64,000 nt of DNA from Calcarisporiella thermophila CBS 279.70 (lineage: Eukaryota > Fungi > Calcarisporiellomycota). The translations under genes and the position numbers were made by a program. Shown here piece after piece: positions 3,554 to 8,854 of the stretch. The notes below the pieces were generated by a model, which worked only from the letters and a program-made list of their open reading frames with translations, was not told the origin of the DNA and searched no databases. The first letter of the stretch is position 1. Every line of letters begins with the position of its first letter. The stretch covers positions 1,065,443-1,129,442 of the forward strand of contig NW_027192191.1 in NCBI RefSeq assembly GCF_041956535.1, written 5' to 3'.

Positions 3554-5203
3554 TCAAACCTCGTTCCTCTCTCCGCCATCTCTTTTCTTTAAATACAGCA
3601 ATACGTCCATCTTCGTCACCACATACTTGGCCCGTCGATCCCCCTTCTTCGCAACCACCACGGCCGCAGGGTGCTTCTCGAAAAACGGTACCAGTTCGCT
3701 CAGCGGGGTATCCTCGGTAACATCCATGGCGTGTTGCGATCGATCAATCCGATACTTCACCTTGCCAACTTCTTCCCCGGAGGTCACGTAGTGATTCGAG
3801 ATACGCTCGATCACATTCCCTAGACTCACAAAGCCAACCAATTCCTCCGACGGGCCCGCAACGAGTATTGATCGATCGAGCCCCTTTTGTCGCATCAAAT
3901 CAATGGCGTCTCTGCAAGGCACCCCTTCGTCAATAGAGGGGAGGTCGGGCAACTTCAGATCCTTTACCACCGCTCCCCCATACTGCTTCACCCGCCTGGT
4001 CTCCTCTCTCTCAACATTCTTATCGGTATAACGGTTGCATTTCATCCATTCGTCGTCCATGAACTTGCTAAAATAATTGCGCACCCCATCCGCCAATAAT
4101 GTCACGCACTTCTGCCCCGGGCCAAGCTCTCTAGCAGCTTCAATGGCGGCGACCATGACTGAGCCGGAAGAACCCCCGCACAACAAGCCTTCCTCTCTAA
4201 TGAGACGGCGTGTCATCTGGAAAGCCGCCTCGTCATCCGTCTTGATCCATTTGTCGACGAGCGACCGATCAAGCGCACGCGGAATGAAATCGCGGCCGAT
4301 GCCTTCGACCGTATAGCTCTTCACGCTATCGTTGAGCGAGTCGGGCTGAGCGAGGATGGAGCCGTGAGGGTCTACTCCCACAATCTTGACATTGGGGCAT
4401 TTCTCCTTCAGCTTGCGCGCCACTCCCGTCAGGGTGCCTCCCGTGCCAGCCCCCGCCACAAACATATCCACCTTCCCACCGCAAGCGCGCAGGATCTCCT
4501 CGGCCGTGGTGTCGTAGTGAGCGATGGGATTGTATGGGTTGCTGTACTGGTCGAAAACCACCGAGTCTTTGATTTCCTCGTTTAAGCGTTTGGCAACACT
4601 AATATAGGATTCGGGAGCGTCCCGTGCGGCCTCCGTAGGCGTGCGGACAATCTCGGCCCCCAGCGCCTTTAGAACGACAATCTTGTCCCACGATATATTC
4701 TCGGTCAATGTGAAAATGGTGCGGTATCCCTTGACGGCGGCAGCCATTGCCAGCCCTATGCCAGTGTTTCCAGAGGTAGGCTCAATAATGGTGCCACCGG
4801 GTTTGAGAAGACCAGACCTTTCTGCCTCCTCTATCATGCGCTTGGCGATACGATCCTTGACAGAACCGCCGGCATTGAGGAATTCGCACTTGGCCACTAG
4901 TATTGGGTGAGGGTGAGGCTGTCAGTAAGTACTCCAAGAAAAGCCAATGCTCATAAGCATACGAAGGTCGCATTCCAGTCCCTCCGACTTGGCAATCTTG
5001 TCCACGCGAACCATGGGCGTGTTCCCAACATGCTCAAGAATGCTGTTGAGGATAAGCGGTCGCTGGGTTTCTTCCCTATTTAGAGAATGAGACAATGGAA
5101 CAAGCATTCGCGTTTGGGAATTTAGAAATTACATTTCCATGTGATGGTAGCTGTGCCTTGCAGGATCCCAAGAGGGGTCATCGGCGGTAATTGGGATCTT
5201 CAT
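3554..5203 (-). CDS. Cystathionine beta-synthase paralog 2 (diverged)
   Basis: Exons 5203-5133, 5075-4963, 4896-3554. PLP lysine motif [23 protein letters not shown]; degenerate C-terminal CBS pair; same intron positions as the upstream copy. Confidence 0.92.
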
Positions 5204-5953
5204 GCCAATAGGAATAATTGGTTGACGACGGGAGCTCTCACGGGGAGAAACGAAGGTGTTTAGGGATATCGCTAGTTTATATAGGATGCATTTGACAACT
5301 TTTTAATTCTTTCCTCTTTTGAAGAGGGGCGGAGGGAGGGAATTCTTTCGCATCGTTTCGGCTGTACTTTCAGGCCCCCCTCCCCCATAGAGCCCAATCA
5401 TGGCCCTCCGACCGAGCCCAGGGCTCACGGGAGAGAGGTTGGAACGTTCTTTGTTTTGCACGTTCGACTTCTAAGCGGCACGTCATGTGGCTCTTATCAT
5501 GCTAGGGGAGATAGTTCGCCTCGTGAGGATAAGATTGTACCAGCGAATGCATATTACGTGGGTATTTTCACTCTGAGAGAGTTTGCAAAGTTGAGCCTGC
5601 AAACTGCCAAGCGAGTTATTCATTTAGGAAGATCCGAAGCAAAGCCTGCAGGGAGCTCATGGAAAGGAGCTCGGAAGGAAGACTTTTCCGGGGTGGGGTT
5701 CAACTGACACCATCCTCATCCCTCTCGTCATGGAGGAAACAAGCCTAAAGAGGCTAGAGGAGCCTTGCCCGCTCCTCGGGCTAGAATTTCATCGTGTCAC
5801 AGCGAGATAATCATGCGACGCTTGAATTTTAGGTGCAGGACAGGGGGATAGAAGAGGAAATGAGTTGAGAGTTTATTATATATTTAATACGTAGTCTATA
5901 GGATAGGGTGGCATGTATGATAAATAACAACACAAGCTACTTTCTTTTTTTTT

Positions 5954-7638
5954 TTACATCCGCTTGACCAGGTATTGCAGGATATCCACCTTGGTCACCA
6001 CGTGCTTCACCCGCCATTCACTCTTGCCCTCGGTCACCACGGCCGCTGAGTTCTTCTCGAAGAACTGGGCCAGCTCGCTGAGGGGAGTTTCTTCGGTGAT
6101 TTCAACAAAGCCGTTGGAACGCTCGAACTTGAACATCACCTTGGCAACCTCGTCCTCAGGCACGGCGCGACCGCTTGAGATGCGCGACAACAAGTTGCCG
6201 AGCGTCACCAGGCCGACCAGATTCTGCGATGGGCCCGAAACCACTGGCAGTTGGTCGAATCCGTTCTTCTGAAGAACATCGATGGCATTTCGGCATGACA
6301 CGCTCTTGTCCACAGTGACGGCAACAGGCAATCCAAGATCTTTGACCTTGGCGCCTCCATACTGCTCCACCCGCTTCGTTTCCTCCCGCTCGAACTCCTC
6401 GTCGGTAAACTTGTTGTGCTTCATCCAGCCATCGTTCAAGAATTTAGTCATGTAGTTGCGCACTCCGTCGGCCAACAACACCACGCATTTTTGTCCGGGC
6501 CCAAGTTCCTTGGCAACTTCAATGGCGGCGGCCATGGCGGAGCCGGAAGATCCACCACACAACAAGCCTTCCTCTTTAATGAGGCGGCGTGACATGCGGA
6601 ATGAGGTCTTGTCATCACTCTTGATCCATTTGTCAACGAGCGACCGATCAAGCGCACGTGGAATGAAGTCGTAGCCGATGCCTTCGACCGCATAGCTCTT
6701 CACGCTATCGTTGAGCGAGTCGGGCTGAGCGAGGATGGAGCCGTGAGGATCCACTCCCACAATCTTGACATTGGGGCATTTCTCCTTCAGCTTGCGCGCC
6801 ACTCCCGTCAGGGTGCCTCCCGTGCCAGCCCCCGCCACAAACATATCCACCTTCCCACCGCAAGCGCGCAGGATCTCCTCGGCCGTGGTGTCGTAGTGAG
6901 CGATGGGGTTGTATGGGTTGTTATACTGGTCCAAAATCACAGAGTCTTTGATCTCCTCATTCAGTTTTTTGGCAACACCGATATGAGATTCGGGAGCGTC
7001 CCAGGCGGCCTCCGTAGGCGTGCGGATAATCTCGGCCCCCAGCGCCTTCAAAACATCGACCTTCTCCTGAGACATCTTCTCAGGCAATGTGATAATGGTG
7101 CGGTATCCCTTGACAGCGGCAGCAAGCGCCAATCCAATGCCGGTATTTCCCGAAGTGGGTTCAATGATAGTGCTTCCGGGCTTAAGAATGCCTTGCTTCT
7201 CAGCCTCCTCGATCATGCGCTTACCGATACGATCCTTGACGGAGCCACCTGCATTGAAGAATTCGCACTTGGCAACTATAGGCAATACAAAAGGCAGTTA
7301 GCGCTGTGAGATCCCCGGCCGATCGAGGCATTGTTTACAAACTTACGCAGATCACATTTGAGTCCCTCCGACTTGGCGATTTTGTCCACACGAACAAGAG
7401 GGGTATTTCCAACATGATCAAGAATGGTATTCAGTATAAGCGGCTCTGGTACACTGAATGAAGACAGAAAAGGGGGAGATCCATGAACACTCAAAACATA
7501 CACACAATGCAACATGGCAACAGGAAGGTCAGATCAGAGGACATACCTGTTAACATGATTATAATCATCGCTCACGGTTGGATCCCAGCAAGGGTTATCG
7601 AGGTAAGCAGGATTTGTCTTGTCAATGGAGTTGGTCAT
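5954..7638 (-). CDS. CYS4: Cystathionine beta-synthase (canonical copy)
   Basis: Exons 7638-7547, 7453-7347, 7275-5954. [42 protein letters not shown] and [11 protein letters not shown] domains. Confidence 0.96.
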
Positions 7639-7762: not shown

Positions 7763-7779
7763 ACGTCACATTGTGACGT
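7763..7779. promoter_or_regulatory. Perfect palindrome ACGTCACA-T-TGTGACGT upstream of CBS copy 1 (paired TGACGT bZIP/CRE-like half-sites)
   Basis: 8-bp inverted repeat with 1-nt spacer about 125 bp upstream of the CBS ATG, just beyond a TATA-like element. Confidence 0.45.

Positions 7780-7899: not shown

Positions 7900-8854
<955 letters not shown>

Follow-up and report, generated by a model that had tools for sequence, protein, structure and literature searches.

Human cystathionine beta-synthase (CBS; PDB 1JBQ, 4COO and 4L0D), of the heme- and PLP-dependent class E, binds its heme through Cys52 and His65, and the paper on structure 1JBQ reportedly describes salt bridges from Arg51 and Arg224 to the heme propionates. 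Arg266 of the human enzyme contacts the Cys thiolate (PMC6040266). Yeast Cys4 (PDB 6C2H) and other Dikarya CBS belong to the heme-independent class C. The insect and mammalian enzymes have been classed as heme-binding, and those of yeast, apicomplexans and bacteria as heme-free (PMC8225704); a review states that unicellular eukaryotes lack the heme domain (PMC6040266). In the full-text literature that we searched, the coverage of which leaves out most subscription journals, we found no account of a heme motif in CBS from fungi or protists.

Here we describe a CBS gene from the fungus Calcarisporiella thermophila, within a window (the whole stretch of DNA analysed) of 64,000 nucleotides. Its product carries an N-terminal arm of about 35 residues, which we are inclined to read as a partly decayed relic of an animal-type heme arm, without canonical heme. 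The wider pattern of such arms across species is of more interest than the Calcarisporiella locus itself.

Gene structure and identity of the enzyme

The gene comprises three exons on the minus strand and encodes 506 amino acids, identical to the NCBI model VTP21DRAFT_450 (P0001). Exons were searched singly, and the whole-protein steps (alignment, model and tree) were run on P0001 as given in the database. Exon 3 proved 100% identical to P0001 in a word search, the first 67 residues of P0001 are those of spliced exons 1 and 2, and the total lengths are also equal. The features are as follows.

7547–7638, minus strand: exon 1; ATG at 7638, 30 codons plus 2 bases (phase 2), arm residues 1–30, equal to the start of P0001
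7585–7590, minus strand: Cys17 (TGC, 7590–7588) and Trp18 (TGG, 7587–7585); heme-ligand Cys column and Trp of the C-x-W column, with the middle residue deleted
7555–7563, minus strand: Tyr26 (7563–7561), Asn27 and His28 (7557–7555); HMMER and MAFFT align Tyr26 with human His65 and His28 with human His67
7454–7546, minus strand: intron 1; 93 nt, GTATGT...CAG
7347–7453, minus strand: exon 2; remaining arm residues (S-V-P-E-P-L), then the first part of the PLP catalytic core
7276–7346, minus strand: intron 2; 71 nt, GTAAGT...CTAAC branch site...TAG
5954–7275, minus strand: exon 3; PALP domain, Bateman (CBS pair) module and stop at 5956–5954
7237–7235, minus strand: PLP lysine Lys80, in exon 3; aligned with human Lys119
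6796–6794, minus strand: Arg227, in exon 3; human Arg266 equivalent
3557–5623, minus strand: tandem paralog VTP21DRAFT_449 (P0029), 587 aa, just downstream of copy 450

A reading of the letters without database searches (the sequence-only reading) had proposed a small first exon encoding the arm, and this was borne out: the 30 codons from the ATG reproduce the proposed peptide exactly, and P0001 is identical. That peptide had been placed just before the core segment; the peptide itself is right, but six residues (S-V-P-E-P-L) had been skipped before ILNTIL. Codon 30 is followed by AG and then by the GTATGT donor; the two bases join the T of exon 2 in a codon (AG|T) for Ser31, which falls on the Ser conserved in the K-S-V-P-E-P motif of Umbelopsis and Lichtheimia. 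Because Ser31 rebuilds the S-V-P-E-P motif of these fungi, the intron 1 splice is backed by comparison, while unspliced read-through of exon 1 meets a stop four codons on.

We regard exon 1 as genuine. That it is an annotation artefact, the true protein start lying elsewhere, is very improbable given the canonical fungal splice signals in both introns, the restoration by splicing of a motif conserved among orthologs, the identical independent NCBI model and the matching W-D-P arm carried by the paralog; moreover, exon 2 holds no Met, and the next Met is residue 86, within the conserved core.

Upstream of the start codon, by 125–141 nt, lies a 17-bp palindrome (ACGTCAC-ATT-GTGACGT, 7763–7779) that resembles paired bZIP (CRE-like) half-sites. 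The upstream neighbour (8083–8358, minus strand, extending to ~8860) encodes, in several exons, a ubiquitin-conjugating enzyme (E2; Pfam UQ_con, 1.3e-17) that has a Ser/Thr-rich N-terminal extension.

From its domains and alignment scores, we identify VTP21DRAFT_450 as a genuine CBS, one of the fold-type II PLP enzymes that carry a Bateman module. Exon 3 alone matches Pfam PALP (PF00291) with an E value of 7.7e-69 over profile positions 26–295 of 295 and has, towards the C-terminus, two CBS motifs (two stretches of PF00571, E 1.1e-12); Lys80, within an S-V-K-D-R motif, aligns with the human Schiff-base Lys119. Human CBS structures matched exon 3 (E 5.3e-157, 526 bits) better than did bee, Toxoplasma, fly or yeast CBS, with the best cysteine synthases far below at ~234 bits; for the catalytic core, yeast CBS scored 367 bits against ~453 bits for human CBS. 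P0001 is ~55–65% identical to human CBS and has in common with it the PLP lysine, the helix-8 segment A-R-K-L-K-E-K-C-P, the Bateman module and a Cys in the Cys52 column, but lacks its 40-residue disordered N-terminal extension. Yeast Cys4 and other Dikarya CBS are like P0001 in their catalytic core and Bateman module. The enzyme is most likely an ordinary PLP-dependent CBS whose arm packs against the helix-8 side of the core.

An arm homologous to the animal heme arm

Two alignments identify the exon 1 arm as homologous to the heme arm of animal CBS (human residues ~45–75). HMMER gave an ungapped alignment of the query with human CBS that begins at Pro20, with Tyr26, Asn27 and His28 falling on His65, His66 and His67. 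In a MAFFT alignment of 23 arms, Cys17 stood in the human Cys52 column and Trp18 in the Trp54 column, with a one-residue gap for Thr53; the match of Cys17 to the arm pattern is more than chance, since MAFFT lines up Cys17 and Trp18 with the Cys and Trp of 17 arms of the canonical C-x-W type. The same alignment put Tyr26 in the P-H (His65) column and His28 in the second-His column, in agreement with HMMER.

The sequence-only reading had recognized an animal-like Cys/His arm with a Cys–His spacing of 11, taking His28 as the counterpart of His65. The arm is indeed homologous, Cys17 does occupy the ligand column and the spacing from Cys17 to His28 is 11. The motif, however, is C-W in place of the human C-T-W, a form shown by none of the 45 different C-x-W arms in our collection of 206 different arms, and the equation of His28 with His65 failed, as His28 belongs to the His67 column. 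Where an axial His would be expected, as [SD]-P-H some 12–13 residues past the Cys, the column holds Tyr26 and the P-H signature is gone. Between the two ligand columns, the loop has four residues fewer than that of human CBS, and the equivalents of Arg51 and Arg224 are Pro16 and Asn185. As Arg is found at the Arg224 column in none of the fungi tallied, canonical fungal arms included, the Arg51/Arg224 feature may not be a defining one outside vertebrates.

In its C-terminal half (Y-N-H-V-x-S-V-P-E-P), the arm carries the Mucorales motif [FY]-x-H-[VI]-x-S-V-P-x-P. Mucorales arms have no Cys, and because they keep the same His, conservation of His28 is explicable without heme.

Tyr26 in the His65 column and Asn at the Arg224 equivalent count in favour of a relic. 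The Cys ligand and the Trp that follows it would then survive as C-W, with Cys17–Trp18 as the remnant, and the arm would still pack on the core, as Cys-less Mucorales arms appear to, without a six-coordinate Cys/His heme. We infer that heme binding has been lost or weakened in this enzyme. Other observations count against a relic. The Cys-to-next-His spacing in C-x-W arms is mostly 12–13 but ranges from ~10 to 17, so that a spacing of 11 is not disqualifying; in P0061, an arm with the canonical C-T-W, the His65 column likewise holds Tyr, with H-H next to it, so the ligand may shift; and the host here is a thermophile, heme having been reported to make CBS more stable to heat (PMC4133348).

A second explanation, which we consider possible though rather doubtful, is that the protein is a true hemoprotein in which the Cys17 thiolate would pair with a shifted His28 or, unusually, with Tyr26 across the shortened loop, giving a redox/gas-sensing or stabilising heme as in human and fly CBS. 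The presence of Cys17 and Trp18 in the ligand columns, the variation in loop length among canonical arms and the Tyr of P0061 would all suit such an enzyme. The Tyr in the His65 column with loss of the P-H signature would not, and His28 is just as well conserved in the Cys-less Mucorales.

Arms in other fungi, protists and animals

Arm positions were numbered backwards from the conserved G-x-T-P motif that opens the core. The canonical arm, C-[TS]-W followed after ~8–9 residues by H-x-H, is present in the Glomeromycotina genera Rhizophagus, Ambispora, Geosiphon and Racocetra, and a canonical C-x-W...H-x-H arm is present in Jimgerdemannia, a member of the Endogonales. Insects, a crustacean and Trichuris also have the canonical arm. 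A canonical arm, with the full C-[KT]-W...P-H signature, likewise occurs in the unicellular holozoan Syssomonas multiformis (P0147) and the ciliate Stentor coeruleus (P0161), contrary to the published absence of the heme domain from unicellular eukaryotes. The patterns in the remaining fungi are listed below.

Mortierellomycotina: C-x-[FY]-x-G-C...H-R-H
Umbelopsis: C-x3-C-F...H-x-H, with one Cys as far from the core as Cys17
Calcarisporiella: C-W...Y-N-H
Mucorales: arm without Cys
Spizellomyces and three ascomycetes: no arm

All 39 Mortierellomycotina sequences (P0031–P0098) and all five from Umbelopsis (P0081, P0083, P0084, P0093 and P0105) share a pattern of two Cys and two His, C-x3-4-C-x4-5-H-x-H, suggestive of a small knuckle that binds metal, or of a variant heme site. 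These rebuilt arms show that new Cys-based arrangements can be gained, and Cys17 could by analogy have been kept on a re-used arm for a role other than heme binding, as a redox-sensitive thiol or a ligand of another metal. We think this improbable: the Calcarisporiella arm has a single Cys, without the two-Cys, two-His pattern, and nothing positive was found for any alternative ligand.

A maximum-likelihood tree was built from the core only, with arms removed. It recovered Glomeromycotina, Mortierellomycotina, and a group of Endogonales with a pair formed by Umbelopsidales and Mucorales, and so follows fungal phylogeny, which argues that the arm was inherited vertically and decayed several times. 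Two distinct lineages of Mucoromycota have canonical arms, as does each of the three major eukaryotic groupings of this tree, and unordered parsimony requires six changes. Within Mucoromycota, the core tree shows that the arm descended vertically. We rejected the idea that fungi acquired it from animals by horizontal transfer, because the tree of the cores agrees with fungal phylogeny. Together with the canonical arms of Glomeromycotina and Endogonales, the tree indicates that the ancestor had the full motif and that the Calcarisporiella lineage departed from it. The simplest reading of these sequences would be one origin of the arm before the divergence of the sampled eukaryotes, followed by repeated decay, which suggests that heme-CBS is much older than animals. 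An old heme arm that was lost in yeasts, as the sequence-only reading had it, fits both the vertical core tree and the arms of Glomeromycotina, Endogonales, Syssomonas and Stentor. The comparison of N-termini across early-diverging fungi that it had recommended showed canonical arms in Glomeromycotina and Endogonales and no Cys in Mucorales.

The CBS of Glomeromycotina and Endogonales (Rhizophagus P0057, Geosiphon P0076, Racocetra P0108 and Jimgerdemannia P0115) are ~70–73% identical to P0001, with which they share the domain layout, the fungal clade of the core tree and a P-E-P-x-I-L anchor after the arm. Unlike P0001, they keep the full animal-like signature C-[TS]-W...H-x-H, and on this signature they are better candidates for a fungal heme-CBS than the Calcarisporiella enzyme. 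We found none of them characterised in the literature searched. The CBS of Mucorales (for example Lichtheimia P0075 and Mucor P0094) are ~70% identical to P0001 and share the downstream arm motif [FY]-x-H-[VI]-x-S-V-P-x-P-K-I-L, but their arm is shorter and has no Cys, and the Arg266 equivalent is replaced in 21 of 21.

One fungal phylum thus presents a graded decay, from the full motif (Glomeromycotina and Endogonales) through C-x-[FY] (Mortierellomycotina) and C-W with Tyr (Calcarisporiella) to arms without Cys (Mucorales). With the ligand motif present in Glomeromycotina, Endogonales, Syssomonas and Stentor, both the origin and the dispensability of CBS heme become testable with a few recombinant proteins. 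If the fungal enzymes bind heme, simple fungi would become models for the disputed role of heme in CBS, as a sensor or as a folding aid.

In nematode tandem CBS, the catalytically dead N-terminal module often keeps E-C-x-W...G-L-H-K-F, with the His 14 residues on; nematode CBS with C-x-W...H include P0004, P0011, P0013, P0017, P0020 and P0025. C. elegans CBS-1 is experimentally heme-free (PMC3316156), so the motif alone is no proof of heme.

The Arg266 equivalent and the structure model

The sequence-only reading had likened a core segment to the human one containing Arg266. Residues 226–234 (A-R-K-L-K-E-K-C-P) do match human residues 265–273 letter for letter, and Arg227 is the Arg266 equivalent, but the residue is not diagnostic. 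Arg occupies this position in both Calcarisporiella copies, in 39/39 Mortierellomycotina, in 5/5 Umbelopsis and in four of the six canonical Glomeromycotina and Endogonales arms; in Mucorales it is found in 0/21, with Lys, Gln or Ala instead, which looks like relaxation after loss of the Cys. That lineages with an arm Cys have Arg here, bar two of the six Glomeromycotina and Endogonales, while no Mucorales does, counts against a relic, and retention of Arg227 would suit a hemoprotein. The residue is, however, non-specific: we rejected it as a heme marker because it is also present in the Ser-bearing paralog and in 3/3 ascomycete CBS that have no arm.

A scan of core columns for differences between canonical-arm and Cys-less proteins placed the helix-8 positions 266, 267 and 270 near the top, with Calcarisporiella of the canonical type. 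The scan was rejected as evidence for heme, being confounded by phylogeny; within Mucoromycota, the 24 columns that split Glomeromycotina from Mucorales showed no clustering at the heme site.

The human redox motif C-P-G-C retains just its first Cys here (C-P-N-V, residues 233–236, 6767–6778, minus strand). Val, as in P0001, or Ile stands at the second Cys position in most fungi, and Cys in 6/21 Mucorales.

The AlphaFold model of P0001 has a mean pLDDT of 93.7. Aligned with truncated human 5mms_D, it superposes over 349 residues at 1.5 Å, with arm residues 10–35 on human residues 45–74; the arm (residues ~10–35) follows the path of the human heme arm at a pLDDT of 75–89. In VIA structural alignments, model residue 10 pairs with human residue 45 (offset 35), which puts Cys17 at human residue 52, and with residue 5 of honeybee 5ohx (offset −5), which puts Cys17 at residue 12, the position of the C-T-W Cys in the related bee sequence P0130. 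The alignment with Drosophila 3pc3 begins with model residue 9 against chain residue 14, an offset that presumably fits the heme-ligand Cys of the fly. The model aligns with full-length human, fly and bee CBS through residue 506, and with the heme-free Toxoplasma, yeast and Legionella structures only from residue 32–35; yeast Cys4 superposes from model residue 35 on and has no counterpart of arm residues 1–34.

The course of the arm along the human path counts against a relic, and the offsets that bring Cys17 to human residue 52 and bee residue 12 are what a hemoprotein would give. As a control, we considered the Cys-less CBS of Lichtheimia, the arm of which was modelled with a pLDDT of 73–93 and aligned with human CBS from residue 48. 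Evidently, AlphaFold will place any homologous arm along the path already known, at least in these models, and docking of the arm was rejected as evidence for a heme site because the Cys-less control was equally confident.

Tandem copies differing at the cysteine

The Calcarisporiella locus further provides two tandem paralogs as a natural pair, one with the arm Cys and one without. P0029 is 74% identical to copy 450 and has Ser at the Cys17 position (S-W-D-P, against C-W-D-P), yet keeps W-D-P and the Arg266 equivalent, which counts in favour of a relic. This loss of the Cys with retention of the arm speaks against a hemoprotein. MAFFT places His in the His65 column of P0029, where copy 450 has Tyr, although this alignment is less certain owing to an insertion in P0029; each copy therefore lacks one canonical ligand.

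In the core tree, the two copies are sisters with 100% support, on branches of 0.037 (copy 450) and 0.46 (copy 449), and judged by branch length copy 449 is the fast-evolving one. A Cys is usually lost fast if unconstrained, yet it is kept here in the slowly evolving copy, which counts against a relic and for a hemoprotein. We nevertheless prefer to see the arm of copy 450 as a relic. A more ambitious proposal, joining a heme arm of pre-opisthokont age (ciliate, unicellular holozoan and Mucoromycota) to a Calcarisporiella enzyme that would be a thermophile's heme-CBS with non-canonical ligation, beside a natural Cys-to-Ser paralog that would act as an internal control, seems to us unlikely as a whole.

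P0029 also has an N-terminal extension of ~80 residues, and Pfam finds in it one stretch of CBS motif, compared with two in copy 450.
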